IMG/VR virus record: IMGVR_UViG_3300032315_001715
Location: 388,800-452,799 of that record
DNA length: 64,000 nucleotides
Direction: 5' to 3' (one strand)
Position numbers and translations under genes: made by a program. Shown here piece after piece: positions 7,778 to 21,608 of the stretch (position 1 is its first letter; each line of letters opens with the position of its first letter). The notes beneath the pieces are model-generated. The model made no database searches and was not told the origin of the DNA. It saw nothing but the letters and a program-made list of their open reading frames with translations.

Positions 7778-9262
7778 TCATGCGACCGAATTCAGCAGGG
7801 TTGTGTAGGTTTTCATGTACGAGCTCGCAATGTTATTGGTCATCTTGGAATATTCGGTCCTGCCGATGGATCGCAGATTGTTCTTGTCAAAAAATTCATG
7901 ATTGTGTCCACGTCCCATTAGGTTTGCGACATCCCACGGGCTACATGTTAGATCCTTCCCGAGCTGTTCCAGCCGAGGTTTAAACTCATCGGCAACAAAC
8001 TTGATGGCATCCTTGCGATGCCAATTAGGCAAATGCCAAACGGTCCTGTCATCGTCTGGAAATGTGTATCCATGTTTTTCAAGCTCGAAGCTTAGCCTGC
8101 TAGGAGAAAGCATGTCCTTGGCCAACCACAACGGTGCTATACCGATGTGATACAGATCATTTTCCATGAACCAGTCGGCCCACGTTAGTATGTCTTCCTT
8201 GGTATCTCCAGGCAAGCCTGCTATGAATCCGACCTGTTGTCGGATCTGTCCTTTCCATATATCATGATATAAGTGTGGGATGTAAGTTCGAGCGTGCTTA
8301 CCACTCCAGCCCTTACCGACTGCCATCGATGCTTCAAGCCCCAGGCTTTCGATGCCATGATATGTGGATACCAGCCCGGATTCTTGCAGCATTATCGGAA
8401 CGTCGGGCATGCTTTGTAATAGATCGGCCCTGAGGAATGCTGCATATCGTATCTTGAACGGCAAAGACATTACCATTTCGTGCCAGGCTTGCATTTTTAT
8501 CATGGTGTCATTAAAGGTATCGCATATTATGACGTAGCTTGTTGTTTGCCATTTTTCATGATTATATAGGAGTTCTTGCTTGATCATTTCCATGCTGCGA
8601 AGGTAATCAAGTTTCTTTCTCCCGAGTAATGGATGGTTGCAAAACTTGCAGCTGAATATGCACCCCCGGCTGACCTCCAAGGGCAAGGTTTCTTTTGGTA
8701 ATATAGCATCATGCTCAGTAAATCGAAAATCATCGCATTCTATGTTGTACCTTACCTGATTTGGTTTTTTCCAAGAGATTCTCGACGATACGGTTTCTCT
8801 GATACCGACTGGGGCCGGCGTACCGAGCTTGAGATGCTCAAGGAGGTCTAGGAATATGTCCTCAGCGTATTCCTTGATGCTGCTATCAACGATACCCCAA
8901 TCCGGAAGCCAATTTGAGTTGAATCCTCCGATGATCACGTGTATCAATGGGTAATGAGACTTTATCACACGCATCGCTAAGTAAACATGATATGGAAGTA
9001 GGTGTTTTTGGCCGTCAGGCCATTGGTGCATTCTTTGCGATATGAATGTTGCACTTAGACCGAGTATCTTGGTGCTCGGGGTGATGAATCGATTAATGGA
9101 TGCTATTAGTTGGTTAGGTTCCATTCGAGCAACATGATCGATGATCTGAATGGTATGTCCGTGTTTTCTAACGAAATGGGCCAGCTTGTATGGCCCTATG
9201 TATCGATGTATTATTCCCGGTACATCGCCTTCAGCACCATTCGATAGTATGATTGCATCCAT
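7778..9262 (-). CDS. B12-binding-domain radical SAM protein, paralogue of 5700..7190
   Basis: EVSRGCIFSCKFC; collinear similarity to the 496-aa copy. Confidence 0.85.
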   Translation of the reverse strand: MDAIILSNGAEGDVPGIIHRYIGPYKLAHFVRKHGHTIQIIDHVARMEPNQLIASINRFITPSTKILGLSATFISQRMHQWPDGQKHLLPYHVYLAMRVIKSHYPLIHVIIGGFNSNWLPDWGIVDSSIKEYAEDIFLDLLEHLKLGTPAPVGIRETVSSRISWKKPNQVRYNIECDDFRFTEHDAILPKETLPLEVSRGCIFSCKFCNHPLLGRKKLDYLRSMEMIKQELLYNHEKWQTTSYVIICDTFNDTMIKMQAWHEMVMSLPFKIRYAAFLRADLLQSMPDVPIMLQESGLVSTYHGIESLGLEASMAVGKGWSGKHARTYIPHLYHDIWKGQIRQQVGFIAGLPGDTKEDILTWADWFMENDLYHIGIAPLWLAKDMLSPSRLSFELEKHGYTFPDDDRTVWHLPNWHRKDAIKFVADEFKPRLEQLGKDLTCSPWDVANLMGRGHNHEFFDKNNLRSIGRTEYSKMTNNIASSYMKTYTTLLNSVA

Positions 9263-10204: not shown

Positions 10205-10984
10205 TCACACCTGGACGATCTTTGCTCGCTCCATTATCTCTGGCCAATGTTTGGAATGGGGTCGGTGATCGCGGCACGGCCATGATAGGGCATATTTTCT
10301 GATCGCCGACTTCCAAACATCGACGATCATTATCGTTCTTGGTTTTAACCCAACATGGGCAGTGCCATGGAGAACATTAGCGTCATCAAATCCAAAAATA
10401 TCGCCGTCTTTCCACTGGTGCTTCCACCCCTCTATGTCAAACACGCAGCCGTTTGCTTCATCGAGGCACAGATGTAGCCTGATGTAGTTGTGATTCAGCC
10501 CCCAATGGTGATTTAATATTGATCCTGGATGTGAGATATTGAAGGTTACTGAACCGATAAAATCCTTGACCATACCGATGTACGATGTCATGAACGGCAT
10601 GCTCTCCGTCCAATATGTTGGGTTCCATCTAAGAGTTTCTTCTTCTTTCCAAGAGCTTGATTGTTTTTCGTTATCGTCCAACAGTGAATTCCGGATAAAC
10701 ATGCTGATACCGTCAAATCTTCCGTGATAAAGAGGTTTTTGAAATCGATGGGTGATGCCATTTGGCTTTGATATCGTCTGATCCGTCCAGGTATTTTTGG
10801 TTCGAACACCTTTTTTAATCAAATAACTCCAAAGCTCATCGCGTATCCGCGTCCAATTTTCAGTCAAAGGATTGATAATGGGATTGTTGGTAAATCTAAT
10901 ATACGGCGATTCTGTCAAATGCATTGCCATCAGAACTGATCCTCTGTTATCATGATATTTATCTGACGGCTGCCCTAACTTCAT
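10205..10984 (-). CDS. Aspartyl/asparaginyl beta-hydroxylase-like 2OG-Fe(II) oxygenase
   Basis: HWG..IRLHLCL..WKDGDIFGFDDANVLHG..RTIMIVD. Confidence 0.75.
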   Translation of the reverse strand: MKLGQPSDKYHDNRGSVLMAMHLTESPYIRFTNNPIINPLTENWTRIRDELWSYLIKKGVRTKNTWTDQTISKPNGITHRFQKPLYHGRFDGISMFIRNSLLDDNEKQSSSWKEEETLRWNPTYWTESMPFMTSYIGMVKDFIGSVTFNISHPGSILNHHWGLNHNYIRLHLCLDEANGCVFDIEGWKHQWKDGDIFGFDDANVLHGTAHVGLKPRTIMIVDVWKSAIRKYALSWPCRDHRPHSKHWPEIMERAKIVQV

Positions 10985-11075: not shown

Positions 11076-11843
11076 TTATAGGAGGCTTATCAGTGTATTA
11101 ATACCCTCAACGGCCGTGTGCGACATGCTAACATCATGTCTACGATTGACCTTGCTCTCATATGGATTGATCCGTATCAACGTTGACGTCCGTTCTTCGG
11201 CGATGTAACGTATGGATGGTATCACCGTGCCGGCACCTATCTCAATACCCAGCACGCTCATCCTGGGTTCCATCCATCTGCGGAAACGATCCTCTCCGAG
11301 ATCTATGTTGGTCCAAACCATGCTTGGATCGCTAAACATCAGAACGTTGGGCCTCAAGGACTGCTGGCACCGAGCGCACCTAGGGATCTCATCGATCGAT
11401 GACAGGGTTGCAGTAAATCTTGGCATCGGTTGCAGTTGTCTCGTGCATGGCTGCTTGCATTGTGCATGCCGTAGATCGCCGTGTATCTCGTAAATGCGAG
11501 CAGGATCATATCCGGCCATGTGGAAATGCCCGTCAACATTGCTGGTCACCACGAAATAATCCTTGCCATGCTGGTTCACGGCATCGAGCAACCTGGTGTA
11601 ACCAGCATGGGGTTTGGTGTGACCATAGGCCAGCATGCGGCTTATGTAAAAATTCCAGGAGGCCAATGGATCGTCGTCAAATCCCCTAGCGGTTGCCAGG
11701 GATATGAAATCCTCCTTGGCCTTGGTCCACATGCCATTGCTTCCACGGAAATCAGGCAATCCGCTATCAACGCTCATTCCGGCTCCGGCAAGTATGAGGA
11801 TACCATCTGCTGAATGGAACAAGCTTGAAATGTAATCTTGCAT
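11076..11843 (-). CDS. Sir2/CobB-family NAD-dependent deacylase
   Basis: AGAGMSVDSGLPDFRG, TSNVDGH, EIHG, CxxxC..CxxC, RPNVLMF, IGAG, INP. Confidence 0.9.
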   Translation of the reverse strand: MQDYISSLFHSADGILILAGAGMSVDSGLPDFRGSNGMWTKAKEDFISLATARGFDDDPLASWNFYISRMLAYGHTKPHAGYTRLLDAVNQHGKDYFVVTSNVDGHFHMAGYDPARIYEIHGDLRHAQCKQPCTRQLQPMPRFTATLSSIDEIPRCARCQQSLRPNVLMFSDPSMVWTNIDLGEDRFRRWMEPRMSVLGIEIGAGTVIPSIRYIAEERTSTLIRINPYESKVNRRHDVSMSHTAVEGINTLISLL

Positions 11844-11865
11844 TATCTCGACCTTTGCTTATCTA

Positions 11866-11940
11866 TGGTGCTCCCACCCGGACTTGCGCCGAGCTCAATC
11901 CCATACCAAGGGATCACATCGCTGTCTATGCTTTGGGAGC
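11866..11940 (-). tRNA. tRNA-Thr(GGT)
   Basis: ATCCC TTGGTAT GGGAT; T-loop CGCAAGT; ACCA. Confidence 0.85.
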
Positions 11941-11944
11941 AAAC

Positions 11945-12114
11945 TGGTGCCGGATGAGGGATTTGAACCCCCGACCTTCGGTTTTTCTTGGACTTGCGGG
12001 CTTTAGGCCTTCTGTCCTTCATGGACGTACACAGAAGTAAATTCTCTGCACGGCTCCTGAGATGTTACCCATCACGGAAACAAAACCGCTGCACTACCAC
12101 TGTGCTAACCCGGC
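11945..12114 (-). tRNA. tRNA-Thr(TGT) interrupted by a 95-nt insert (11985..12079)
   Basis: 35-nt 5' part ending GCGGT TTTGT and 40-nt 3' part starting AAACCGA join to a canonical 75-nt cloverleaf. Confidence 0.85.
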
Positions 12115-12120
12115 ATATCC

Positions 12121-12196
12121 TGGTGGAGCATGTCGGATCTGCCCCGACGGCCTCTGCCATGCCATGACAGCGCTCTCCTAACTGAGCCAATGCCCC
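12121..12196 (-). tRNA. tRNA-Ala(GGC)
   Basis: G3:U70, A32-U38, loop ATGGCAT, T-loop GGCAGAT. Confidence 0.9.
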
Positions 12197-12219
12197 AAGA
12201 AACAATTATTGCAGGCTAC

Positions 12220-12804
12220 TTATCTCCTGTCAACCACAAATGGGTTGAATATGTCGATTGCTTGGTCCCACTGGACCAATTCGTTGGTGCTGCGGTGCTT
12301 GAGGACCAAGCTCATGCACCATCGTCCCTCGTCTGTATCATTAACGATGTTGTGTGGACCTCCAACGTTGACCAAGCTTGGCTGGCCGATGTTGGCCGAC
12401 CATGCCATGTCGCAATCAGCCGGATCCCAGCGGTAGTATTCCGTTCCTATCCGTGTCTTGGCCGTGGTGTATCCTAGACCACCTTTGTTATCATTGTACC
12501 AACACATGCGACTGCTGGCAGCACCGTAGGCCCAGTTCAGCTTGACATGCTCGTCAAGCCTGGAACCATCGGCATGTATGGCGGTTGACCATCTAGGCGC
12601 TGTGTAAAAGATCTCTGCATGATGAACCATGATACCACGCAGTGCAAGCCATCCGTGTATGCGAGGATCAATCTTCTCGACCGGTAGATTCCATATCGTG
12701 GATTTTTGTGGTAGTCCGAACGATTTGATGCCATCCATGGCGTACGTCGTTGCGGTAAATCCGATGCCGATGATCCGTTCATATCTGTTTTTTATCATCG
12801 GCAT
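12220..12804 (-). CDS. Hypothetical cupin/2OG-oxygenase-like protein, paralogue of 14930..15502
   Basis: IHADG..KLNWAYG..PSLVNVGGPHNIVN..RWCMS. Confidence 0.6.
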   Translation of the reverse strand: MPMIKNRYERIIGIGFTATTYAMDGIKSFGLPQKSTIWNLPVEKIDPRIHGWLALRGIMVHHAEIFYTAPRWSTAIHADGSRLDEHVKLNWAYGAASSRMCWYNDNKGGLGYTTAKTRIGTEYYRWDPADCDMAWSANIGQPSLVNVGGPHNIVNDTDEGRWCMSLVLKHRSTNELVQWDQAIDIFNPFVVDRR

Positions 12805-12818
12805 CGGACATTTAAATT

Positions 12819-12894
12819 TGGTGGAGCCTATCGGGATCGAACCGATGACCTGAAGCTTGCAAAGCTACTGCTCTCCCATCTGAGCTAAGACCCC
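12819..12894 (-). tRNA. tRNA-Ala(TGC)
   Basis: Canonical cloverleaf, G3:U70. Confidence 0.95.
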
Positions 12895-12986
12895 ATTTGC
12901 TTTTATTTAACTTCGCTAGAAGTGTCTGTCAACCCCCTCCTGCGTGATTTCGTCCGGTAATCTGGCAATATTATTGAATCGACAGA

Positions 12987-13616
12987 TTATCTAGAGTCGG
13001 TAACCGTGTAGTTATTAATCAACAAATGCATTCTGGGTTTATCGCCGTCGTTTTTAAACGTATGGGCTATGCGATTAGCTTCAACCTTCCAAACGCGCCC
13101 GTCGGCAGGCATGTGCAGCTTGGTTTTGTTGCCATTGTGATCAAATACCCAATGGCAATCCGGATTGGTAAAAACAGCCACATGGTATCGTTCGGCCACA
13201 TGCAGATCCTTGTGCATGGGATATTGACGACGCGAACCTAACCAGGTTAGCTGGCATCTTCCAACAAACGGCTGCCGTAATCCGAACGTGGAAACATCAG
13301 TTAACACCTGTCCTAGATAGAGATCCTTGATCTCGTCGAGCATTTCGGTAAAATCAATCTCCTTGATACCGTGTTCACGTAATTCCGAGTGGCTTTTTTG
13401 CCATAGATGCCATCTATCTGACCCCTGCAATCCTGGTATATGGGTAAGATTGATGGAGTATCCAAACCATCGTTCAACACTGCAAACATGATTGATCCAA
13501 TCAAGGGATATGTCCAATCGATCAAGCAGGGTCATCACGCTATCGCACAATCTCTGATGGTCGACGACGTAATCAATCGGATAACAAAAGTTTGGTATTG
13601 AGGTGACGGTTTGCAT
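12987..13616 (-). CDS. Asp/Asn beta-hydroxylase-like (jelly-roll) protein
   Basis: MHKD..RYHVAVFTNPDC..HMPADG..HTFKN..RMHLLI. Confidence 0.65.
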   Translation of the reverse strand: MQTVTSIPNFCYPIDYVVDHQRLCDSVMTLLDRLDISLDWINHVCSVERWFGYSINLTHIPGLQGSDRWHLWQKSHSELREHGIKEIDFTEMLDEIKDLYLGQVLTDVSTFGLRQPFVGRCQLTWLGSRRQYPMHKDLHVAERYHVAVFTNPDCHWVFDHNGNKTKLHMPADGRVWKVEANRIAHTFKNDGDKPRMHLLINNYTVTDSR

Positions 13617-13634
13617 GCATGATTCTCCTAAAAA

Positions 13635-13724
13635 TGGCGGAACGGGTGGGATTCGAACCCACGGTACCTGTTAGGGTACGCACAGTTAGCAACCGTGTGC
13701 CTTCAGCCTCTCGGCCACCGTTCC
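13635..13724 (-). tRNA. tRNA-Ser(GCT)
   Basis: Canonical type II cloverleaf, G73. Confidence 0.95.
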
Positions 13725-13735
13725 GTATCACTTAT

Positions 13736-14287
13736 TTAATAAAGATCCTTGATCTTTTCAAGAATCGATTTCATCTCAACAACGTCGCTGTGCTTGGTGA
13801 TGCTCACGGCATTGTCCATGTGTCGGTGCATCTTGGCTCGACGCTCGTCCATGATCAAATCAAACAGCGCATTGTTGAGGTTAAATCGGTCATCAAGCAT
13901 GCGGATGATCCGTCCGTTTGGCAATAGTATGTCCCGCACGCTTTCAACGTAGCGATAAGCTGATTCAGCGTCCATGCCATGTTGTACCATGATGCCGATG
14001 GCAGCAGCGGTGCTGCGGCTGAGACCTTGATGGCAATGCACCAACAACCGATCGCCAGCTTGCAGGTTCTTGGAAAAATCAAGAATGGCATCAAGGTGTT
14101 GTTCATTTGGCAGCACCCACTCGTCCCTCAATTGGCTTTCAACATCATGGAGATGAATGACTAGATGGTTCTCGCAGGTAAACGGCAAGTTTACACCCGG
14201 ATCCACCATGCTGATGGTGTGCGTGGGCCAGCCATTGTGGGCCCACCTGCCCGCTTCGAATATACCGCCAATCTTTAATTCAAACAT
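13736..14287 (-). CDS. CX5R (PTP/DSP-like) phosphatase
   Basis: LLVHCHQGLSRSTAAA; likely start MFELKIGG. Confidence 0.8.
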   Translation of the reverse strand: MFELKIGGIFEAGRWAHNGWPTHTISMVDPGVNLPFTCENHLVIHLHDVESQLRDEWVLPNEQHLDAILDFSKNLQAGDRLLVHCHQGLSRSTAAAIGIMVQHGMDAESAYRYVESVRDILLPNGRIIRMLDDRFNLNNALFDLIMDERRAKMHRHMDNAVSITKHSDVVEMKSILEKIKDLY

Positions 14288-14377
14288 GCACGCCCCCGGT
14301 GAAATGATGCAGGGTATTACCAGCGTTAAGTCTGCGAGCTGGAGGAGTTTGACCAATGCACCTCCAAAGGTTCCTCG

Positions 14378-14563
14378 TTAGGCCTGGACGACCTTGAGCT
14401 GGTATCCACATGCAACCAGCCAGATGTTGAGATTTTCCATGACCTCTTCCGGGCTGCGGTTTTCCCAGTTCATGCTCACGCATCTAATATCCTCGCTGGA
14501 ACTGCGTTCCCGTGCGTTGTAGCTTACGTTCCAGCTTTCGTTTACTTGCTTGTTCTTGGCCAT
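14378..14563 (-). CDS. Small hypothetical protein
   Basis: ATG after GGAAAA (MAKNKQ..); the longer ORF call overlaps a tRNA. Confidence 0.5.
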   Translation of the reverse strand: MAKNKQVNESWNVSYNARERSSSEDIRCVSMNWENRSPEEVMENLNIWLVACGYQLKVVQA

Positions 14564-14589
14564 GTGTTTTCCTTGTTTTTTTTGAAAAT

Positions 14590-14707
14590 TGGCTCCTTCT
14601 GCTGGACTCGAACCAGCAACCACCTGATTAATCTTGGACCTGATGGAGTTGCACCATCCAATCTATTGATCCCACAGTCAGGGGCTCTACCATTGAGCTA
14701 AGAAGGA
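14590..14707 (-). tRNA. tRNA-Asn(GTT) interrupted by a 43-nt insert (14631..14673)
   Basis: CCTGA CTGT | TAA TCAGG restores a canonical arm; U1-A72, G73. Confidence 0.85.
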
Positions 14708-14714
14708 ATAAAAC

Positions 14715-14791
14715 TGGAGTTGTGGGAGGCGCTCGCATCCTCGAATACCTGTTTTGCAGACAGGGCCATTACTATCTCTGGTCACCACAAC
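14715..14791 (-). tRNA. tRNA-Cys(GCA)
   Basis: CCTGT CTGCAAA ACAGG; U73; atypical T-loop. Confidence 0.8.
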
Positions 14792-14797
14792 ATAACT

Positions 14798-14871
14798 TGG
14801 AGTTCGGAGAGGGAATTGAACCCCCGTGGCGGGTTTTGCAGACCCGTGCCTAACCACTCGGCCACCCGAAC
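14798..14871 (-). tRNA. tRNA-Cys(GCA)
   Basis: Canonical, U73. Confidence 0.9.
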
Positions 14872-14929
14872 ATTTAACTGATTCTAACATGACATTTATA
14901 GTGGTCTTTTTCCCATAAAGCAACCAACA

Positions 14930-15502
14930 TCATGATTCCTTAATCCACGGACCGAGTCGATCAATGGCATCGGCCCATTGCAGGATCTTACCTGTGCGTA
15001 GATTTCGTATGGTATAGCTGAAACACCACCTTCTATGTGGTGTATGGTTGATCACGGTGTGAGGTCGTCCGACGTTTAGCAAGCTTGGGCTTGCTGGTTC
15101 CATATCAAGCACCTTGCGTATCTTGTGCGGCTCAAAAACTCGGCTAACCGTGCCGGCCGAGGTCACATGATCCACTCCGGTATAGCCTTCCTCAACTGGT
15201 TCGAACCACACCATTCGGCTGCCCGGCGCACCATATATCCAGTTTATCTTGCATCTGGTTGCGTTTGGACCATCTCGACCATCGGTATGGATACCAAGCG
15301 TCATGCCCGGAGGGGTATAAAACGCTTCGCTGTAGGCAACGTCAAGTTCTATGGTTCTCAACCAAGAAGAAACGATGTTGTCCCCGGAAAACGGTATTAT
15401 ACCACGTTTGGTACAATCCGTCCATTTTGACATGCACTGCGCGATTATCTCCGGATCGGGCGATATTGGTATCGCTAACGGTTGGTGATATATGTTTTCC
15501 AT
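14930..15502 (-). CDS. Hypothetical cupin/2OG-oxygenase-like protein, paralogue of 12220..12804
   Basis: IHTDG..KINWIYG..PSLLNVGRPHTVIN..RWCFS. Confidence 0.6.
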   Translation of the reverse strand: MENIYHQPLAIPISPDPEIIAQCMSKWTDCTKRGIIPFSGDNIVSSWLRTIELDVAYSEAFYTPPGMTLGIHTDGRDGPNATRCKINWIYGAPGSRMVWFEPVEEGYTGVDHVTSAGTVSRVFEPHKIRKVLDMEPASPSLLNVGRPHTVINHTPHRRWCFSYTIRNLRTGKILQWADAIDRLGPWIKES

Positions 15503-15537
15503 GCCGTTTCATTACCATTGATGTGATTTAATGTGTT

Positions 15538-15614
15538 TGGCGGACCCGGAGGGATTCGAACCCCCATCGAAGAGCTTAGAAGGCTCTTGCCTTATCCTGT
15601 TAGACCACGGATCC
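15538..15614 (-). tRNA. tRNA-Arg(TCT)
   Basis: AGAGC CTTCTAA GCTCT. Confidence 0.95.
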
Positions 15615-15620
15615 AAATTT

Positions 15621-15696
15621 TGGAGCGGCGTGCGGGATTCGAACCCGCGTCATCAGCTTGGAAGGCTGGGGTAATTGGCCTTTATACGAACGCCGC
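15621..15696 (-). tRNA. tRNA-Gly(TCC)
   Basis: Loop CTTCCAA, U73. Confidence 0.95.
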
Positions 15697-15701
15697 CTAT
15701 G

Positions 15702-15734
15702 AAGTATTTATACGCTATCTTACAGCGTCTGTCA
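15702..15734 (-). promoter_or_regulatory. Overlapping sigma70-like (TTGACA-N17-TATAAA) and late (TATAAATA) promoter
   Basis: Minus strand TTGACA gacgctgtaagatagcg TATAAATA. Confidence 0.7.
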
Positions 15735-15826
15735 AGCACTTCCATGATCCTTCGTGCCAGTTCCACCCACCTTCGAGCATTGCTACCCGGGACGTGCATC
15801 CCATGGGATAAACACCTTGGATTCCA

Positions 15827-15902
15827 TGGCCGTCCCGGAGGGACTCGAACCCCCAACCTTCGCGTTCGAAGCGCGCTGCTCTATCCATTGAGCTACGGAA
15901 CG
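15827..15902 (-). tRNA. tRNA-Arg(TCG)
   Basis: Loop CTTCGAA, canonical. Confidence 0.9.
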
Positions 15903-16397
15903 TTATCTGAAATACTGATACCTGTCCTCGAGGTTTGACCGGTCCTTGATCAATCCATCGAACTGGCCCTGACCATTTGGATAAAAACCGCTTGGATCAA
16001 GTATCTTGCCTCGGTTCTCTACCCAAGCATGTGGTATCCACCTCAGCTGATCCTCCATGTTTTCAGATCTAGCATACTTTGCACGATCCGTTTCCTTTCT
16101 TGGATTGAAGCCGTGCTGCTTCATCGCTGCCAGCTCCTCCTTAGTAAAGGCATCCAAGTCCAGATCCGGCACATCGGTCCGAAACCACCCCTTGGCCTTC
16201 TTGCCACCTCGCATGTGTCCAGCTGGTATGACCTCGGCGGTGACGATACCCCGGCTTTCTAAAAATTCTAGGAAATCAGACGCGGCACCGCCGCATCCGC
16301 CCCTGGTGGCATAGATGCTTAATCTCTTGTCTCCAGCGGTCTCCCAAAATTCCAGCAGCAACGGGTCAAAGCCTTGGGCTATTTCAATGAGTCTCAT
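15903..16397 (-). CDS. Hypothetical protein
   Basis: Start MRLIEIAQ with TAAATA 5 nt upstream; the longer ORF call runs over two tRNAs. Confidence 0.65.
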   Translation of the reverse strand: MRLIEIAQGFDPLLLEFWETAGDKRLSIYATRGGCGGAASDFLEFLESRGIVTAEVIPAGHMRGGKKAKGWFRTDVPDLDLDAFTKEELAAMKQHGFNPRKETDRAKYARSENMEDQLRWIPHAWVENRGKILDPSGFYPNGQGQFDGLIKDRSNLEDRYQYFR

Positions 16398-16422
16398 GCC
16401 GATATTTATCGGCAATGGAGCA

Positions 16423-16516
16423 TGGCGGAGAGCAGTGGTCTTGATCCACATGCCGGTTTCTAGCCGGCACCCACTCCTTAGCAGGGAGGGACGAACACTC
16501 GTTCGCTTTACTCTCC
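16423..16516 (-). tRNA. tRNA-Ser(GCT), 6-bp D-stem, T-loop ATCAAGA
   Basis: Loop CTGCTAA; D-arm GCGAAC-GAGT-GTTCGT; same design as 5310..5403. Confidence 0.8.
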
Positions 16517-16521
16517 AAAAT

Positions 16522-16597
16522 TGGCTGCCCACCCTCGGTTCGAACGAGGAACCTCCTGTTTCAGAGACAGGCGATCTGCCAGTTGATCTAGTGGGCA
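16522..16597 (-). tRNA. tRNA-Gln(CTG)
   Basis: CCTGT CTCTGAA ACAGG; U1-A72. Confidence 0.95.
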
Positions 16598-16606
16598 ATA
16601 AATTAT

Positions 16607-17179
16607 TTATTTTTCGATAAAATACAGAGCTGTTTGAATGAATTGCTCTTTATCTTTGACACATTCTTTCCATTCTATTCGAAGTGTTTGCCATCCTTGC
16701 TCTAAAAGCCATGCATCTCGTTTTGCATCACTCTCTCTGGTGTTTTCGTGAGTGCCGCCGTCGATTTCAATGCATTTCTTTATTTCTGGCCAAGCAAAAT
16801 CAAGTGAATAAATTCCAAATGGGTATTCCGCAATGTAGTTTTTATTCTCAAATCTTTTATCAATCACAGATTCGAACCACTGCTCTGGATAACTTTTTGG
16901 ACGCCCTTTGAAATTTTTTCCCAAAGTAGGGTATGTCCCCTCCTTCAAACGTCTCAGCATGTGATGTCTGAGCTTGATTTTGGTTTCATCTGAGTGCTTC
17001 TGAGGAGGTCGATGTTTCCTGCTCATCTTTTGAGCTTCGCTTTTAGAACGAGGTGTGAACAATCCATTTTTGATTGCCTTGTTGATCGTGTTCAAGGTTG
17101 GTCCTAATTCTCGCATTGGGACCCCACTATCATATAGGCTCTGTAATTCTTTCCAATTAAACGGAGTTTTGTTTCTCAT
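16607..17179 (-). CDS. Free-standing endonuclease, DUF559/Vsr-like PD-(D/E)xK with NUMOD-like N-terminus
   Basis: YSLDFAWPEIKKCIEIDGGTH..DAKRDAWLLEQGWQTLRI; HSDETKIKL. Confidence 0.8.
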   Translation of the reverse strand: MRNKTPFNWKELQSLYDSGVPMRELGPTLNTINKAIKNGLFTPRSKSEAQKMSRKHRPPQKHSDETKIKLRHHMLRRLKEGTYPTLGKNFKGRPKSYPEQWFESVIDKRFENKNYIAEYPFGIYSLDFAWPEIKKCIEIDGGTHENTRESDAKRDAWLLEQGWQTLRIEWKECVKDKEQFIQTALYFIEK

Positions 17180-17193
17180 GACTTATTTATGAT

Positions 17194-17226
17194 AAGTCGG
17201 TTGTTCTACCATTAAACTAATCCCCA
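17194..17226 (-). pseudogene. Orphan tRNA 5' half fused to the endonuclease promoter
   Basis: TGGGGAT TA GTTT AATGGTA GAAC A ACCGA CTT then hairpin GACTTAT-CATAA-ATAAGTC and ATG; no 3' half seen. Confidence 0.7.
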
Positions 17227-17233
17227 AAATTAT

Positions 17234-17309
17234 TGGCTGCCCGTGATGGTTTCGAACCACCAACATCGAGATTCAAAGTCTCGCGTTCTGCCAATTGAAC
17301 TAACGGGCA
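17234..17309 (-). tRNA. tRNA-Gln(TTG)
   Basis: Loop CTTTGAA. Confidence 0.95.
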
Positions 17310-17319
17310 ATAAACTCTT

Positions 17320-17396
17320 TGGTGTTCTCGACGGGATTCGAACCCATGACCTTCGGCTTAGGAGGCAGACGCTCTATCCAGCTGAGCTACGAGAAC
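17320..17396 (-). tRNA. tRNA-Arg(CCT)
   Basis: Loop CTCCTAA. Confidence 0.9.
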
Positions 17397-17401
17397 AAGA
17401 T

Positions 17402-17476
17402 TGGTTGGACCGGTCAGGATCGAACTGACACTCTATCGGTTATCAACCGATTGCTTTACCATTAAGCTACGGTCCA
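17402..17476 (-). tRNA. tRNA-Ile(GAT)
   Basis: ATCGG TTGATAA CCGAT. Confidence 0.95.
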
Positions 17477-17529
17477 ACAGCTAGTGATATTTATAGTCTA
17501 TCGCCGGCAAAAAAGCAAGCGATGATTTT

Positions 17530-17614
17530 TGGTGCCCAGGGCGAGATTTGAACCCGCATGACCTTGCGGCCGCCACCTTCTGAGGATGGAGTGTATGCAT
17601 TCCACCACCTGGGC
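17530..17614 (-). tRNA. tRNA-Leu(CAG)
   Basis: Type II, A73. Confidence 0.95.
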
Positions 17615-17744
17615 AATATCATGGGTCTTACGGTGCCAGGACACCCGCCCTTGTTATGGTTGCCGGATTCTGTTCCCGGGGCCGGCACCCCGGATCGTTC
17701 CCATGGCTTCTACTAAGCAGTCACTCCATGGGAACATCAATATT

Positions 17745-17821
17745 TGGTGCATCCGGTGGGATTCGAACCCACACTGTATGATCTCTCAAACCATTGACTC
17801 TACCAGTTGGCCTACGGATGC
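17745..17821 (-). tRNA. tRNA-Leu(GAG), short variable loop
   Basis: ATGGT TTGAGAG ATCAT; no V-arm. Confidence 0.8.
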
Positions 17822-17826
17822 AAAAT

Positions 17827-17901
17827 TGGTAGGTGAGGAGAATTTTGAAATCCCGTCCCTCGGTATGTAACACCGATGCTCTGCCTCTGAGCTACTCACC
17901 C
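17827..17901 (-). tRNA. tRNA-Val(TAC)
   Basis: TCGGT GTTACAT ACCGA. Confidence 0.85.
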
Positions 17902-17906
17902 ATGTT

Positions 17907-17982
17907 TGGTACCAACCGTGGGGATTGAACCCACCTAGATCTGCTTGTAAAGCAGACGCCCTCCCCAGATGGCTCGGTTGGC
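17907..17982 (-). tRNA. tRNA-Val(TAC), near-identical to 18435..18510
   Basis: TCTGC TTTACAA GCAGA. Confidence 0.85.
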
Positions 17983-18011
17983 ATACAACTGATATCATGA
18001 TAGACGGGCTA

Positions 18012-18302
18012 TTAAGCCTCGCTTACTGCATCCGGGAATGGTGGATTTCCGCCGCTGCCAACTCCCGTGACTGACACGAAGCCGGTATATCCCGATAGTC
18101 CTGGTAGCTCCAGCACGCCGGTTGGTGCAGGCACTGCTGCATCGCCAACGCGCACGATGACGGTCATTTCAGAGTCATCCTTGCTGATAATCGCACGCGG
18201 AACGACGATCCATGATGATCCGTCAAATCCTAGGACGGTGTCACCGTCTAGTCTGTAATCTCCTGTATTTGCCATTTTCTTGGCTCCTTTCTCTTGATCC
18301 AT
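18012..18302 (-). CDS. Hypothetical protein
   Basis: ORF between tRNAs with upstream TAAATA; start may be MANTGDY. Confidence 0.55.
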   Translation of the reverse strand: MDQEKGAKKMANTGDYRLDGDTVLGFDGSSWIVVPRAIISKDDSEMTVIVRVGDAAVPAPTGVLELPGLSGYTGFVSVTGVGSGGNPPFPDAVSEA

Positions 18303-18354
18303 GTTGGATTCAATGCATATTTATGTTCTAACATGGACAAAAAGCAATAAATGA

Positions 18355-18430
18355 TGGTACCTACTGTGGGGATCGAACCCACCTCTAACAGCGTGTCGAG
18401 CTGTCGCCATCCCCAGATGACAAAGCAGGC
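18355..18430 (-). tRNA. tRNA-Val(GAC), C33
   Basis: ACAGC TCGACAC GCTGT. Confidence 0.8.
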
Positions 18431-18434
18431 ATAT

Positions 18435-18510
18435 TGGTACCAACCGTGGGGATTGAACCCACCTAGATCTGCTTGTAAAACAGACGCCCTCCCCAGATGG
18501 CTCGGTTGGC
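18435..18510 (-). tRNA. tRNA-Val(TAC), duplicate
   Basis: One base differs from 17907..17982. Confidence 0.85.
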
Positions 18511-18519
18511 ATGTAAAAC

Positions 18520-18596
18520 TGGTGCCCGTGGAGGGATTCGAACCCCCAACATCCTGGTTCTAAACCAGGCGCCTCTTCCAGTTGCGCTACACGGGC
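18520..18596 (-). tRNA. tRNA-Leu(TAG), short variable loop
   Basis: CCTGG TTTAGAA CCAGG; A73. Confidence 0.85.
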
Positions 18597-18602
18597 AAAA
18601 CT

Positions 18603-18676
18603 TGGCGACCATACGGGGAATCGAACTCCGGCGACCTGCTAGACAGGCAAGCGTTCTACCATTAAACTATATGGCC
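18603..18676 (-). tRNA. tRNA-Asp(GTC), U37
   Basis: Loop CTGTCTA; G73. Confidence 0.85.
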
Positions 18677-18683
18677 ATAAAAT

Positions 18684-19184
18684 TCAAGGATTGTTGAGTT
18701 TCCACCAACGATTAATGGAATCAGCACCAATCTCATCACACACCTCAACAAGCTTGCCGCCGAGGCCAAGGATATCATCAAAGTGTTGGGCTAACAGCAT
18801 GTTCGGGCATGCTCGCGGACGATCCGCTTTTAGCCATTCCACACCTTCCTCAAGCCTATCAACACCGTTGGCCTGCAACCACAGCGCCAGCGCCGACGCC
18901 GTTGAGCGGCATGCACCAGCAAAGCAATGCACCACCACCCGGGCATCTCCGGGCAAACGCTGGCCAAACTCTAGGATCGATTCTGCGTGCTCTCTCGTCG
19001 GTGCATACAGCTTGGCAGGATCCTCTTCGTCATCAAAGTTGATGGCAAAGTGATTCTTGGCATCGATGCGTGGCGGACGGAATACCCGATCACCAACATC
19101 CAGCATGGTGATGAGATGCGTGGCAGCAAACCGCTTGGCGGTCTTTTTGACCTCGCTCTTTCCACAAACGGTAAACTCGGGCAC
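18684..19184 (-). CDS. CX5R (PTP/DSP-like) phosphatase, paralogue of 13736..14287
   Basis: VVVHCFAGACRSTASA..RACPNMLL. Confidence 0.85.
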   Translation of the reverse strand: MPEFTVCGKSEVKKTAKRFAATHLITMLDVGDRVFRPPRIDAKNHFAINFDDEEDPAKLYAPTREHAESILEFGQRLPGDARVVVHCFAGACRSTASALALWLQANGVDRLEEGVEWLKADRPRACPNMLLAQHFDDILGLGGKLVEVCDEIGADSINRWWKLNNP

Positions 19185-19206
19185 GTTACACCTCCTTGTT
19201 AGAAAA

Positions 19207-19281
19207 TGGTCTCGCGTGCGGGTGCCGGCCCCGCTACTCCGGGATGAAAGCCCGGTGTTTTAGCTGGTAAACTAACGCGAG
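19207..19281 (-). tRNA. tRNA-Glu(TTC), T-loop GCCGGCA
   Basis: CCGGG CTTTCAT CCCGG; ACCA. Confidence 0.8.
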
Positions 19282-19425
19282 TTACGATTCCGCATGCGCT
19301 GGCCCCCCAATCCCGCCGCGCTGCACGACACCACCTGCCTTGCTTCTTTCGTCGCGTAACATGGCATCTTACCGGTCCATGACATGCTAACCTGTCCGCA
19401 GACAGGGAACCATGCACGGATGATT

Positions 19426-19510
19426 TGGCTCAACCGGCAGGCTTCGAACCTGCACGCCTTGCGGCGCCTGATTAACAGTCAGGTGGGTCTACCAGTTCCC
19501 CCACAGTTGA
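19426..19510 (-). tRNA. tRNA-Asn(GTT) with long variable arm
   Basis: CCTGA CTGTTAA TCAGG then CGCC-GCAA-GGCG arm; U1-A72, G73. Confidence 0.85.
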
Positions 19511-19569
19511 ATAAAACCCAGTAGTTGTTGTTCTTGTTGCATGCTTTATAGCACGCACCGTATTTGGTG

Positions 19570-20244
19570 TCAACGCCTATTTTTTATCGTTCTTCCTTTG
19601 ATCCATCCGACTGGTATAGGATCAGATTTTTTAATTTTTACAGATTTTTGACCATCTGTTATCCACATTGTGTCAAACTGACTATTGGATTTGCCAAATC
19701 CTCGCCCTTTTGATGATTCGGACATTTTAGATCTAGTTTCAGCCGAATGTGTCTTTCCTTTGAAAGATGCAAATATGTCAGGCGTATATTTTGATTTAAT
19801 GGTTTCTTGCCATTTTTTTGAACGATTTGCAACTCTTTCTGTATCTAATAGAAAAAGTCTTAGACCCTCCTTGGCTTTTTCTTCTATCCCTCTAGATTTT
19901 GCTACTTTCATAGCCTTTTGATTTTTTTCTTTTCTTAACGATTCATTTGAATTGATATAACCAAATCCGCCATGTCCTCCTGGACATAAATTATATGTAT
20001 CTGGTCTTGCACACATTTCTTCTGTCACAAGTTCTTTTTCTTTGTCGTTCATTTCTTTTTCACAAGAAAAGACGTGTAAGATTTCTTTGGAAAAATTTTC
20101 AATACCATATTTGTCAATTGCAAGTTTTATGAGCTTGCCAGATCCAAAATATTCATCATTAAGGTCAGCAGTTTTATGCTTTCCTATATAAATCTTGCTG
20201 TTAAGGAGATTAGTAATTTTGTATATTATGAAGAACATAAACAC
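19570..20244 (-). CDS. GIY-YIG homing endonuclease (Seg-like) with NUMOD3 motif
   Basis: IIYKITNLLNSKIYIGKH..YFGSG..YNLCPGG; FKGKTHSAETRSKMS. Confidence 0.9.
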   Translation of the reverse strand: MFMFFIIYKITNLLNSKIYIGKHKTADLNDEYFGSGKLIKLAIDKYGIENFSKEILHVFSCEKEMNDKEKELVTEEMCARPDTYNLCPGGHGGFGYINSNESLRKEKNQKAMKVAKSRGIEEKAKEGLRLFLLDTERVANRSKKWQETIKSKYTPDIFASFKGKTHSAETRSKMSESSKGRGFGKSNSQFDTMWITDGQKSVKIKKSDPIPVGWIKGRTIKNRR

Positions 20245-20272
20245 CCCCGTTTGGAGTATTTATGAAAAAATG

Positions 20273-20343
20273 AGCGGGTAGCGAGAATCGAACTCGCGCG
20301 TCCACCATGGCAAGGTGGCAGGCTACCTCTACATCATACCCGC
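20273..20343 (-). tRNA. tRNA-Gly(GCC), CCA not encoded
   Basis: CCACC TTGCCAT GGTGG; GCGGGTA/TACCCGC. Confidence 0.9.
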
Positions 20344-20581
20344 ATTATATGGTTAGTTATCCATGCAAGGCGCGTCTAATCCAGTTCTGTCCAAGAGGAC
20401 GACCTTCATGTGGGGTCGCGTCGTTCAATGCACCTTGCCTTGGTGCACCTTGCAAGATTGAAATCCCGTGTTCTACGATACTCGGCTGTAGGTGACTAGC
20501 CCACTATATCCTGGACGGTTGAGTCCAGGCCACCGAATGCTACCATGTCACGGGGTCTTTGGTGGGGGTAAGTCCCAGATT

Positions 20582-21169: not shown

Positions 21170-21227
21170 GAAAGTATTTATGCAAACAGTCTGCTCCAAC
21201 CCTCCAACGTTGGCGCTTCCCCAAATT

Positions 21228-21306
21228 TGGTAGACCAGGTGGGACTCGAACCCACGGTTTTTACTGATTAAGAATCAGCTGCCTTGGCCGCTCGGCGCAC
21301 TGGTCT
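21228..21306 (-). tRNA. tRNA-Lys(CTT)
   Basis: GCTGA TTCTTAA TCAGT; A73. Confidence 0.85.
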
Positions 21307-21427
21307 GTGGTATAATGGCCTTAGAACACTCCGCCGGTGCTGCCCTAACCCTTGTTTGCGCTCAAGTCCCCGGTCTACGGCTGCATCTCAACCAGGGAGG
21401 GCTATCTGCTCTCGTCGTGCTCTAACT

Positions 21428-21502: not shown

Positions 21503-21518
21503 AAATCTCATTCTAACT

Positions 21519-21598: not shown

Positions 21599-21608
21599 GT
21601 AAATTTGG

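Follow-up and report, generated by a model that had tools for sequence, protein, structure and literature searches.

How can a transfer RNA be made from a gene whose anticodon is itself interrupted by a few dozen bases, and what are these bases? The question is raised by two genes on the minus strand of a 64,000-nt stretch of DNA (the window), which is the last 64 kb of the 452,799-bp IMG/VR contig IMGVR_UViG_3300032315_001715 from a giant freshwater phage. A canonical tRNA-Asn(GTT) gene (14590-14707) and an odd tRNA-like gene with anticodon TTT (22286-22419, referred to as Lys-like) are each split between anticodon positions 35 and 36, by inserts of 43 nt and 50 nt, respectively. An initial annotation made from the sequence alone had claimed that the two inserts share a fold containing a T-arm mimic, with paired stems of different sequence and constant GG-TGCAA(C/G)T-CC and CCAAGAT elements, and had inferred a selected three-way-junction RNA that mimics a tRNA elbow and possibly recruits RNase P/Z-like or phage enzymes. 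The observation proved to be real and its sequences and coordinates exact, whereas the interpretation was only partly borne out: the selected fold and its T-arm look-alike are supported, the three-way junction and the CCAAGAT block are not family features, and the recruitment of RNase P, RNase Z or phage enzymes remains an inference. It was also not stated that the inserts split the anticodon and must therefore be removed for the tRNA to work.

The tRNA-Asn gene consists of a 5' exon (14674-14707), the insert (14631-14673, minus strand, GGGATCAATAGATTGGATGGTGCAACTCCATCAGGTCCAAGAT) and a 3' exon with encoded CCA (14590-14630). Rfam detects it as a tRNA with 56.5 bits over 115 nt, and after removal of the 43 nt in silico ARAGORN calls a 75-nt tRNA-Asn(gtt). 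In minus-strand order, the insert comprises a free G (14673), the 5' strand of a closing helix (GGATC, 14668-14672), a single-stranded segment (AATAGATTG, 14659-14667), a T-like stem (GATGG, 14654-14658), a 7-nt loop (TGCAACT, 14647-14653), the second stem strand (CCATC, 14642-14646), an A (14641), the 3' strand of the closing helix (GGTCC, 14636-14640), and the tail AAGAT (14631-14635). The Lys-like gene consists of a 5' exon (22377-22419), the insert (22327-22376, minus strand, AGGCAGATGACAACCAGGTCACATGAGGTGCAAGTCCTCTATGCCAAGAT) and a 3' exon (22286-22326). Its insert comprises a free A (22376), GGCA (22372-22375), a hairpin TGAC-AACCAG-GTCA (22356-22369), a T-like stem GAGG (22349-22352), the loop TGCAAGT (22342-22348), CCTC (22338-22341), TA, TGCC (22332-22335), and the tail AAGAT (22327-22331). 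The body of this gene is atypical (6-bp D stem with a 4-nt loop, T-loop ATCGTTA, and U73-CCA), and the gene is missed by Rfam and ARAGORN even after in-silico splicing, but its homologue in a relative (locus L069:10785-10917; L numbers denote the loci compared) is called tRNA-Lys(ttt), 84 nt, after splicing.

Are the folds real? All pairings drawn in the initial annotation are possible (GGATC/GGTCC and GATGG/CCATC in Asn; GGCA/TGCC, TGAC/GTCA and GAGG/CCTC in Lys), and for the Lys insert they constitute the minimum-free-energy fold. The shared pattern GGTGCAASTCC-N3-20-CCAAGAT occurs twice in the window against 0.00 expected from 100 shuffles. However, single-sequence folding energy is not significant (z -0.08 and -0.42) and was not used as evidence; the fold is established by comparison with relatives, in which absence of compensatory changes had been named beforehand as grounds for rejection. 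Eight more members of the family, here termed class A, were found in relatives (Asn, Lys-like, Ser twice, Leu twice, Met, and Tyr). RNAalifold on a plain MAFFT alignment of 8 members recovers the T-like hairpin and the GG/CC start of the closing helix, with 10 of 12 pairs showing compensatory change. Counting intron pairs only, 92.9% of cells are paired against 68.0 +/- 4.3 in shuffles (0 of 500 as high), and the covariation score is 0.76 against 0.22 in shuffles (0 of 500 as high) and 0.06-0.15 in slid registers. Across the 10 members the closing helix is paired in 40 of 40 cells and the T-like stem in 39 of 39, and 7 of 8 helix positions show compensatory pair types. The Asn orthologue (L083:12885-12945) keeps the fold with two compensatory pairs in the T-like stem (GATGG/CCATC to TGTGG/CCACA), while the L069 homologue of the Lys-like gene shows changes of TGAC/GTCA to TGAG/CTCA and of GAGG/CCTC to CAGG/CCTG. 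A structural descriptor of class A gave 0 hits in reversed sequence, 4 weak AT-rich hits in 1.4 Mb of unrelated phage loci, and 0 hits in 0.9 Mb of cellular genomes. These results bear on the reading of the similarity as chance or as a DNA-level relic, such as a miniature transposon with short terminal inverted repeats or a recombination scar without RNA function. The 4-6 bp closing helix could be read as terminal inverted repeats and the inserts are patchily distributed, but there is no consistent target-site duplication, G-U (G-T in DNA) wobble positions pair only as RNA, covariation extends to the internal hairpins, and the T-loop motif always lies on the tRNA sense strand, which points to selection on the RNA rather than the DNA. 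This reading is contradicted by the covariation data and we regard it as very improbable.

The common design of class A is one free base, a closing helix of 4-6 bp that begins GG/CC, an optional variable hairpin, a T-arm look-alike joined to the closing helix through 0-3 nt, and a 5-nt single-stranded tail AANNN. The T-arm look-alike has a 3-5 bp stem and a 7-nt loop T-(T/G)-C-(A/G)-A-N-N in 10 of 10 members, eight of which were found by ARAGORN or Rfam without reference to the loop. It lies 15-16 nt from the 3' end of the insert in all 10, against 16 nt for positions 61-76 of a tRNA. Several details of the initial annotation required correction. Of CCAAGAT, only CC (paired with GG; 9 of 10 members) and the following AA (10 of 10) are conserved, the last three tail bases being variable (AAGAT, AAACC, AAAAT, AACAC, AACAA, AATAC, AAGCG, AAGAA, and AAAAG). 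The extra hairpin that makes a three-way junction is absent from both Asn members. The loop had been likened to CGCAAGT T-loops of the phage's own tRNAs, but no window tRNA has such a T-loop; the nearest is tRNA-Met (23530-23604), with GATGG TGCGAAT CCATC.

A second, longer class of inserts (class B, 85-95 nt, between positions 36 and 37) was also found, which includes a third interrupted gene in the window, tRNA-Thr(TGT) at 11945-12114 (minus strand), with a 95-nt insert at 11985-12079. Rfam scores this gene at 49.6 bits over 167 nt, the spliced form is a perfect tRNA-Thr(tgt), and the whole-gene fold has z = -3.2. Its 3' domain (11990-12017) reads GGAC AGAA GGC CTAAA GCC CGCAA GTCC, followed by the tail AAGAA, so that a CTAAA hairpin is found instead of a T-loop. 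Relatives of this gene are a Thr gene (L119) and a Pro gene (L059). A search of IMG/VR with the class B 3'-domain pattern gave at least 118 loci, of which only the source and L119 lie in tRNAs, and a search of cellular genomes gave at least 120 loci, none in a tRNA. The pattern GGTGCAASTCC..CCAAGAT gave 49 loci in IMG/VR, of which only the source contig and a near-identical 31-kb contig are true hits; many others are ordinary tRNA 3' ends (T-arm, then acceptor strand, then CCA), which prompted the idea of a minihelix. The Ser-type T-hairpin pattern gave 0 hits in IMG/VR, and a generic scan for cloverleaves with an intron was too noisy to be used (132 hits against 97 in the control). Among GenBank phages, megablast of 6 kb and sensitive blastn of the two interrupted genes matched only tRNA exons. 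Homologues of the ORF at 12987-13616 led to a different jumbo-phage clade with no synteny.

Do the inserts behave as introns? In-silico splicing between 35 and 36 gives tRNAs accepted by ARAGORN in 8 of 9 class A genes (the tenth, Tyr, is left out of this count), with anticodons for Asn, Asn, Lys, Ser, Ser, Leu, Leu and Met. In the Ser and Leu genes the restored anticodon fits a body with a long variable arm, and the Asn body resembles E. coli tRNA-Asn (G73). An uninterrupted tRNA-Ser(GCT) in the window (13635-13724, minus strand) sits just downstream of the phosphatase gene, where a relative (L072) carries an interrupted tRNA-Ser(GCT); in alignment, the window gene equals L072 exon 1 plus exon 2, joined exactly between TTGC and TAA, which defines the insertion point. 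Two alternative readings of the junctions were rejected: if the loop were supplied wholly by the 5' side, the resulting anticodons (His, ochre-suppressor, Arg and similar) would contradict the tRNA bodies, and if the 3' junction fell right after the AA, orthologues would give different anticodons. Exons of orthologous interrupted genes have diverged to 61-79% identity yet still fold as tRNAs, and their introns are 61-76% identical; these genes are maintained, not decaying.

It could be argued that the inserts are never removed, the genes being either disabled or the source of tRNA-shaped RNAs with an enlarged anticodon arm that act as decoys or sponges for host anticodon nucleases or tRNA-targeting defences. 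The only RNA-library contig over the Asn gene (run X10, 204 nt, covering 14582-14757) is unspliced, although it could be precursor RNA or contaminating DNA, and no sequencing run showed a joint that removes exactly an insert; the two joints near the Thr intron are other organisms' uninterrupted tRNA-Thr with different anticodon arms. In addition, the window Lys-like gene has an aberrant body, and an uninterrupted tRNA with the same GTT anticodon exists at 19426-19510. On the other hand, the anticodon halves flanking every intron still match the tRNA body type after 20-40% exon divergence, Thr(TGT) has no uninterrupted copy among the tRNAs called by ARAGORN in the window, and a decoy needs neither an exact 7-nt loop after removal nor constant splice-site geometry. 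We therefore consider this explanation unlikely.

The inserts do not fit the introns known from bacterial or archaeal tRNA genes. Bacterial and phage group I introns also interrupt bacterial-type tRNA genes in the anticodon loop and can be associated with homing endonucleases (PMC3984707). Group I ribozymes are roughly 200 nt or longer, with P1-P9 helices, a terminal G and a U-G pair at the 5' site. The present inserts are 43-95 nt, with last bases in class A of T, T, C, T, C, A, C, G, A or G and a last exon base of T, C or A. A search of positions 11800-26000 with Rfam 15, at gathering scores and at E <= 1, returned only tRNA-clan and spurious plastid-UTR hits; nothing fell on the inserts, with no match to group I or to hammerhead, twister, twister-sister, pistol, hatchet or HDV-like ribozymes. 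Hammerhead-like and group II-like readings were also rejected by inspection. Archaeal and eukaryotic tRNA introns (bulge-helix-bulge, EndA/Sen endonuclease plus RtcB or Trl1 ligase) are protein-spliced and, like the present inserts, short and located in the anticodon loop, and a cut-and-ligate logic is likely here as well. However, inspection of all 10 class A members showed 4+1 unpaired nt on the 5' strand and 5+3 unpaired nt on the 3' strand between the anticodon stem and the closing helix, i.e., both splice sites lie in one 5 x 8-nt internal loop with 3 nt between the 3' site and the anticodon stem, and no conserved 4-bp helix can form as required for two 3-nt bulges on opposite strands. 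The position is between 35 and 36 or between 36 and 37, inside or right after the anticodon, not between 37 and 38, and the host is a bacterial virus.

A new class of very small self-cleaving or self-splicing ribozyme, with the internal loop as active site and exons rejoined by reversal of cleavage or by host RtcB, was also considered. The size (43-95 nt) is in the range of hammerhead, twister and pistol ribozymes, the structure is conserved, with an invariant AA and GG/CC next to both splice sites, and class B has GNRA-like loops and three hairpins. Nevertheless, very few bases are invariant outside the helices and the T-like loop, the loop sequence is explained by T-loop mimicry, and the 5' exon end and the last three tail bases vary freely. 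In view of this and of the absence of Rfam ribozyme matches, such a ribozyme appears unlikely.

The closest precedent is the "enigmatic" tRNA introns of Lak megaphages (Devoto et al. 2019, Nat Microbiol, PMC6784885), whose splicing is unexplained and for which that paper proposed no architecture, covariation analysis or mechanism. Both are non-group-I introns in anticodon loops of tRNA genes of very large phages (over 200 kb), both are patchily present among related genomes, and both have no Rfam match except to tRNA. By our reading of Table S6 of that paper and of a Lak locus (L223), Lak introns also carry a T-arm plus acceptor-like helix that ends 1-2 nt before the 3' splice site, with a T-loop distance of 14-15 nt against 15-16 nt in class A; class B has the helix but a CTAAA loop. 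Lak introns differ in being 79-114 nt and AT-rich, in starting with a separate 5-bp hairpin and an A-rich linker, in containing a nearly complete tRNA-like module (7-8 bp stem, D-like and capped anticodon-like arms), and in sitting between 36 and 37 with a 1-2 nt tail. Class A is cut down to 43-71 nt, its closing helix abuts both splice sites, and it sits between 35 and 36 with a 5-nt AA-led tail. No sequence homology was detected: blastn of the interrupted genes against 50,697 phage records, which include the Lak genomes, matched exons only, and the class A descriptor gave 0 hits in L223.

We propose that the two inserts are true tRNA introns of class A. The analysis itself demonstrates the split between nucleotides 35 and 36 and the shared fold, which resembles a miniature tRNA acceptor/T-arm minihelix whose two ends are the two splice sites. 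That the intron must be cut out and the two halves of the anticodon loop rejoined before the tRNA can decode is a strong inference, which we consider likely. The mechanism is inferred only, and tentatively: excision may be carried out by protein or ribonucleoprotein enzymes that read the tRNA-like shape. An RNase P-type cut would fall at the 5' end of the minihelix, whose first base faces the first A of the tail as positions 1 and 72 do in a tRNA, a second endonucleolytic cut would fall 15-16 nt past the T-like loop, and an RNA ligase that repairs anticodon loops (phage Rnl1-type or host RtcB-type) would then seal the exons. Class A keeps exactly the acceptor/T-arm part of the fuller Lak module, the part recognised by RNase P and RNase Z. 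Partial tRNA mimics of this kind mark endonucleolytic cut sites in other transcripts, as in plant mitochondrial t-elements and the mascRNA of MALAT1, but those elements punctuate transcripts without subsequent ligation, whereas here the mimic sits inside an anticodon, the flanks must be rejoined, and cleavage by these enzymes is inferred. The geometry appears to fit RNase P at the 5' end, and the T-loop motif is present, but the stack is 10-11 bp (10-11 nt on the 3' strand) plus one mismatch (an N-A apposition) against 12 bp in a tRNA, and there is no 3' RCCA. Canonical RNase Z cuts 13 nt past the T-loop, not 15-16, and the tail is not CCA, which leaves the 3' cut unexplained. In class B and in Lak introns the 5' splice site does not abut the tRNA-like helix, so RNase P cannot define it there. 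No RNA ligase, polynucleotide kinase-phosphatase or splicing endonuclease, EndA/Sen-type included, was found among the window ORFs scanned, which do not cover the other 389 kb of the genome, and among 120 of the 2,158 Rnl1 homologues none lay on a 452,799-bp contig.

A less favoured but possible alternative is a dedicated, still unidentified phage-encoded splicing endonuclease that recognises the GG/CC helix end and the AA-led tail and cuts both strands of the internal loop, a ligase then sealing the exons, with the T-arm look-alike serving folding, stability, or binding of T-loop enzymes or a chaperone. The only elements common to classes A and B are the GG...CC helix end followed by AANNN just before the 3' splice site, the splice sites lie at fixed distances from both flanking helices, and the arrays carry many genes of unknown function. 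No candidate nuclease was identified, however; the unknown ORFs of ~190 aa next to the interrupted genes look like 2OG-Fe(II)/cupin oxygenases, and this alternative does not explain why unrelated Lak phages place a full tRNA-like module at the same spot.

Why the introns persist is a separate inference. Three homing-endonuclease-like genes lie inside the tRNA array, at 19570-20244 (minus strand), 20582-21199 (minus strand) and 21653-22282 (plus strand), the last ending 4 nt from the Lys-like gene, with matches to Pfam SegE_GIY-YIG, NUMOD3 and Phage_endo_I and to a PHROG homing endonuclease (E = 1.8e-47). The introns are patchily distributed among orthologous tRNA genes in arrays full of such free-standing genes, and may therefore spread with these nucleases or protect the tRNA gene DNA from them. 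Free-standing homing endonucleases in phage tRNA clusters and collaborative homing (T4 SegB, PMC2330249; mobE and the nrdB intron, PMC2790892) offer a parallel, but any link between these introns and the nucleases is conjecture.

Standard tRNA finders miss or mis-assign these genes: ARAGORN in default mode missed all three interrupted window genes, and with its intron option called Asn as (att) and Thr as Tyr. tRNA inventories and codon-usage inferences for huge phages are therefore biased. The family gives the Lak introns a common architecture, i.e., a tRNA-like module at the 3' splice site, and provides a minimal 43-nt substrate that can be transcribed and tested directly with RNase P, RNase Z/BN, RtcB or Rnl1. 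In the boldest reading, which is possible but doubtful, giant phages use a third kind of tRNA splicing, in which the intron imitates a minihelix so that the cell's own tRNA end-processing machinery (RNase P and a 3'-end endonuclease) cuts it out of the anticodon and an anticodon-loop RNA ligase reseals the tRNA; if so, T4-type tRNA repair enzymes would have a constitutive splicing role, and bacteria could host protein-dependent tRNA splicing. Protein-dependent tRNA splicing is textbook for archaea and eukaryotes, and bacterial tRNA introns are thought to be self-splicing group I ribozymes. The conserved, covarying family of 43-95-nt introns in the anticodons of phage tRNA genes fits neither scheme and, if the inferred removal takes place, would imply a way of splicing tRNAs in bacteria or their viruses that has not been described.

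The stretch analyzed here is the last 64 kb of the 452,799-bp IMG/VR contig IMGVR_UViG_3300032315_001715 (window x = contig x + 388,799), and the DNA runs that hold related sequence are freshwater and lake metagenomes. Between about 5 and 26 kb it carries a minus-strand array of about 40 tRNA genes (34 by ARAGORN, 35 by Rfam), interleaved with homing-endonuclease-like genes, two dual-specificity (cysteine) phosphatase genes (13736-14356 and 18684-19184, minus strand), a Sir2 gene (11076-11843, minus strand), and several paralogous 2OG-Fe(II)/cupin-like genes. Relatives carry NADAR, ADP-ribosylglycohydrolase, and ART-PolyVal genes nearby, and the role of this group could be NAD/ADP-ribose-linked RNA repair or counter-defence. 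Four genes of 190-259 aa on the minus strand (10205-10984, 12220-12804, 12987-13616, and 14930-15502) all look like the 2OG-Fe(II)/cupin fold (Asp/Arg-hydroxylase or JmjC-like); two of them match the same large all-viral clusters without a Pfam family, and they might be RNA or protein hydroxylases. Two paralogous radical-SAM proteins of ~495 aa, each followed by a methyltransferase gene, lie next to two Ser tRNAs (5700-9262, minus strand), and a separate 451-aa protein (28692-30047, plus strand) carries collagen triple-helix repeats. Two tRNA-Val(TAC) genes with identical T-arms and acceptor strands (17907-17982 and 18435-18510, minus strand) lie 528 nt apart and a third Val(TAC) is at 17827-17901, which looks like a recent local duplication. 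Unusually long tRNAs are found at 25043-25130, 25217-25307, and 5527-5612 (minus strand): two "Trp(CCA)" genes of 88 and 91 nt, the latter scoring 32.7 bits as tRNA-Sec, and a Ser(TGA) gene that passes the Rfam tRNA-Sec gathering score (52.2 bits). Relatives also encode tRNAs with anticodon CTA (amber-suppressor type, labelled "Pyl" by ARAGORN) at the related-phage loci L059, L075 (20055-20129), L077 (14580-14655), and L083 (two copies), which hints at TAG readthrough or recoding in this phage clade, while none was called in the window.

Two genes of this array are the subject of this work. The first, at 14590-14707 (minus strand), is a canonical tRNA-Asn interrupted by 43 nt (14631-14673); Rfam scores it 56.5 bits as a 115-nt tRNA, ARAGORN in default mode misses it, and removal of the 43 nt gives a perfect 75-nt tRNA-Asn(GTT). 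The second, at 22286-22419 (minus strand), is an atypical tRNA-like gene with loop CTTT|TAA that is interrupted by 50 nt (22327-22376) and is missed by both programs even after the insert is removed, although its homologue in a relative (locus L069, 10785-10917) is accepted as an 84-nt tRNA-Lys(TTT). This second gene, its homologue at L069:10785-10917, and the gene at 19426-19510 (minus strand) are tRNAs with a long variable arm or an atypical body that carry the anticodons GTT (Asn) and TTT (Lys); in bacteria a long variable arm marks Ser, Leu, and Tyr tRNAs, so their charging identity is uncertain and they could mis-decode. All coordinates were confirmed base by base.

The sequence strings and base pairings drawn for the two inserts in the initial annotation are correct, and the sequence pattern that the inserts share occurs twice against zero expected. 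Folding energy alone does not support a structure (z = -0.08 and -0.42), and relatives were therefore sought. None was found among GenBank phages, but homologues of the adjacent phosphatase (87-51% identity, on contigs up to 478 kb) gave access to the tRNA arrays of related phages (loci with L numbers), in which ARAGORN with introns allowed and Rfam found more interrupted tRNAs. We then wrote a structural descriptor consisting of the anticodon stem, U33, one free base, a closing helix of at least 4 bp, a T-like hairpin, 0-3 nt, the closing strand, a 5-nt tail starting with AA, and R37. It found 12 distinct hits against 0 in reversed sequence, of which ten are credible: window Asn, L083 Asn, window Lys-like, L069 Lys-like, L069 Ser(GCT), L072 Ser(GCT), L075 Leu(CAA), L077 Leu(CAA), L077 Met(CAT), and L082/L083 Tyr(GTA). 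These ten are referred to as class A. In 1.4 Mb of unrelated IMG/VR loci the descriptor gives 4 weak AT-rich hits outside tRNAs, and in 0.9 Mb of cellular genomes it gives none. One further gene, L077:1691-1817, looks like class A, but its loop count is off by one.

Orthologous pairs show many double changes that keep pairing. In Asn the T-like stem changes from GATGG/CCATC to TGTGG/CCACA; in the Lys-like genes the hairpin changes from TGAC/GTCA to TGAG/CTCA and the T-like stem from GAGG/CCTC to CAGG/CCTG; in Ser the closing helix changes from GAGGTT/AACCTC to GGACCC/GGGTTC; and in Leu the closing helix, hairpin, and T-like stem all change. In our structural alignment 40/40 closing-helix cells and 39/39 T-stem cells pair, and 7 of 8 positions carry compensatory pair types, a count that is partly circular because the descriptor demands pairing. 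Two independent checks were made. RNAalifold on a plain MAFFT alignment of 8 members predicts the anticodon stem, the GG/CC start of the closing helix, and the T-like hairpin, with 10 of 12 pairs showing compensatory change. When intron pairs only are counted, 92.9% are paired against 68.0 +/- 4.3 in shuffles (0/500), and the covariation score is 0.76 against 0.22 +/- 0.06 in shuffles (0/500) and 0.06-0.15 in registers slid by 1-3 columns. The fold is therefore real and selected at the RNA level, since G-U pairs occur and the motif is strand-specific.

In RNA order the class A design is exon nucleotides 32-35, the 5' splice site, one free base N, a closing helix of 4-6 bp in which the two pairs next to the splice sites are G-C, G-C in 8-9 of 10 members, an optional hairpin (absent in both Asn introns and long in Tyr), a T-like hairpin of 3-5 bp (loops TGCAACT, TGCAAGT, TTCAACT, TTCGATC, TTCAATC, TGCAAAT, and TGCGATA), 0-3 nt, the closing strand, a 5-nt tail AANNN, the 3' splice site, and exon nucleotides 36-38. 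The distance from the end of the T-like loop to the 3' splice site is 15 or 16 nt in all ten members, and in a tRNA positions 61-76 span 16 nt. The free base after the 5' splice site (G in 7 of 10) faces the first A of the tail, as positions 1 and 72 would. The description of the inserts as containing a T-arm mimic is thus right, and the whole intron looks like a shortened acceptor/T-arm minihelix. The three-way junction and the conserved CCAAGAT that were also claimed are not family features, and none of the window's own tRNAs has the T-loop CGCAAGT that had been attributed to them; they mostly have TTCRANN T-loops, and one has TGCGAAT on the same stem GATGG/CCATC as the Asn intron. Non-canonical T-loops are found in the tRNA genes at 19210-19281, 21431-21502, 24091-24163, 25317-25389, and 24457-24530 (minus strand): GCCGGCA (twice), GGCGGAA, GGCAGAA, and AGCGTTA, and the first four of these genes are found by Rfam only and missed by ARAGORN.

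Rfam also flags 11948-12114 as a 167-nt tRNA. This third interrupted gene, which was not part of the initial annotation, is tRNA-Thr(TGT) at 11945-12114 (minus strand), with a 95-nt structured insert (11985-12079) between positions 36 and 37; ARAGORN with introns allowed mis-calls it Tyr(gta), and the whole gene folds with z = -3.2. The insert has three hairpins, the last of which reads GGAC-AGAA-GGC-CTAAA-GCC-CGCAA-GTCC and is followed by AAGAA. The same 3' domain occurs in a tRNA-Pro(TGG) intron of a relative (L059, 85 nt, tail AAAAG) and in a tRNA-Thr(TGT) intron of a different, 333-kb IMG/VR phage (L119, 85 nt, tail AAGGG), with a compensatory GGC/GCC to AGC/GCT change. We refer to these inserts as class B. 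Classes A and B share only the GG...CC helix end plus the AA-led 5-nt tail before the 3' splice site, and a dedicated phage endonuclease that reads this GG/CC plus AA element is a possible, though in our view rather unlikely, means of excision.

Several lines of evidence indicate that the inserts are introns. Splicing in silico at 35|36 gives tRNAs that ARAGORN accepts in 8 of the 9 genes that were spliced at the correct coordinates (the tenth, Tyr, is not included in this count). In the Ser and Leu genes the reconstituted anticodon fits a body with a long variable arm, and the Asn body (G73) resembles E. coli tRNA-Asn. Other junction choices give anticodons that contradict the body or differ between orthologues. 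The window's uninterrupted tRNA-Ser(GCT), at the same place after the phosphatase gene, equals exon 1 plus exon 2 of the interrupted L072 gene, joined exactly at TTGC|TAA. Interrupted orthologues have diverged to 61-79% identity in the exons yet still fold as tRNAs, their introns are 61-76% identical, and the genes are kept by selection. Intron presence is patchy, as Asn, Thr, Ser, and Pro genes are interrupted in some genomes and not in others, sometimes with both forms in one array. No spliced RNA was seen: the single RNA-library contig over the Asn gene, a 204-nt contig of about 95% identity from an aquaculture metatranscriptome assembly (run X10, spanning 14582-14757), is unspliced and may be DNA or precursor, although it shows that a relative occurs outside lakes and that the unspliced form is present in an RNA library. 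The alternative that the interrupted genes are unspliced decoys or dead genes is considered unlikely.

The inserts do not conform to the intron and ribozyme types with which they were compared. No Rfam family other than tRNA is detected at E <= 1 across the array. The inserts are far too short for group I introns, with no conserved terminal G and no U-G pair. No bulge-helix-bulge can be drawn, because both splice sites lie in one 5 x 8-nt internal loop. There are no hammerhead or other ribozyme cores, and a new small ribozyme is regarded as an unlikely explanation. There is no target-site duplication. The closest precedent is the set of tRNA introns of Lak megaphages (Devoto et al. 2019, PMC6784885), whose authors stated that phage tRNA introns had not been reported before and noted that the Thr(TGT) intron "itself may encode a tRNA"; no later paper that explains them was found in the literature searched. 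From Table S6 of that paper and from Lak-A1 (locus L223), each Lak intron consists of a short 5' hairpin, an A-rich linker, and a tRNA-like module, i.e., a 7-8 bp acceptor-like stem, a T-arm with a TTCGAAT-type loop, and an end 1-2 nt before the 3' splice site. There is no sequence similarity to the window's introns. Two unrelated groups of huge phages therefore place a tRNA-like acceptor/T-arm module at the 3' splice site of anticodon-loop introns, and class A is the minimal form.

What is kept in the minimal form is the domain that RNase P and RNase Z read on real tRNAs. We therefore favor enzyme-dependent excision guided by this mimicry, with an RNase P-type cut at 35|+1, followed by sealing of the anticodon loop by an RNA ligase (T4 Rnl1-type or RtcB-type). 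Whereas the covarying fold and its position within the anticodon are shown by the sequence comparisons, the removal of the inserts by splicing is an inference, which we hold to be likely, and the cleavage and ligation steps and the enzymes that would perform them are inferred as well, the chain as a whole being tentative and put at somewhat less than an even chance. There are four weak points in this model. The 3' site is 15-16 nt from the T-like loop, not the 13 nt of a canonical RNase Z cut, and it lacks CCA; in class B and in Lak introns the 5' site does not abut the tRNA-like helix; no ligase or nuclease gene for such a pathway was found in the part of the genome that was read; and, as noted, spliced RNA was not seen. 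A different jumbo-phage clade (L056:13626-14525 and L057, contigs of 345-393 kb), which shares the 2OG-oxygenase-like gene, carries a T4 Rnl1-type RNA ligase that some JGI records label "tRNA splicing ligase", next to AAA_33 kinase and HD genes. The reason that the introns persist may be their association with the many free-standing homing endonuclease genes in these arrays. T4 SegB is a homing endonuclease encoded in the T4 tRNA gene cluster and favors inheritance of that region (PMC2330249), and introns can ride with, or protect against, such nucleases (PMC2790892), but this remains conjecture here.

In conclusion, the structured inserts described in the initial annotation are confirmed and extended to a family, and the interpretation offered for them is supported in part. 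Introns of this kind had been noticed once before, in Lak megaphages, but never explained, and those found here differ in lacking sequence similarity to the Lak introns and, in class A, in being reduced to the minimal form. The finding matters because it implies an undescribed tRNA-splicing route in the bacterial world and supplies a 43-nt substrate with which to find it.
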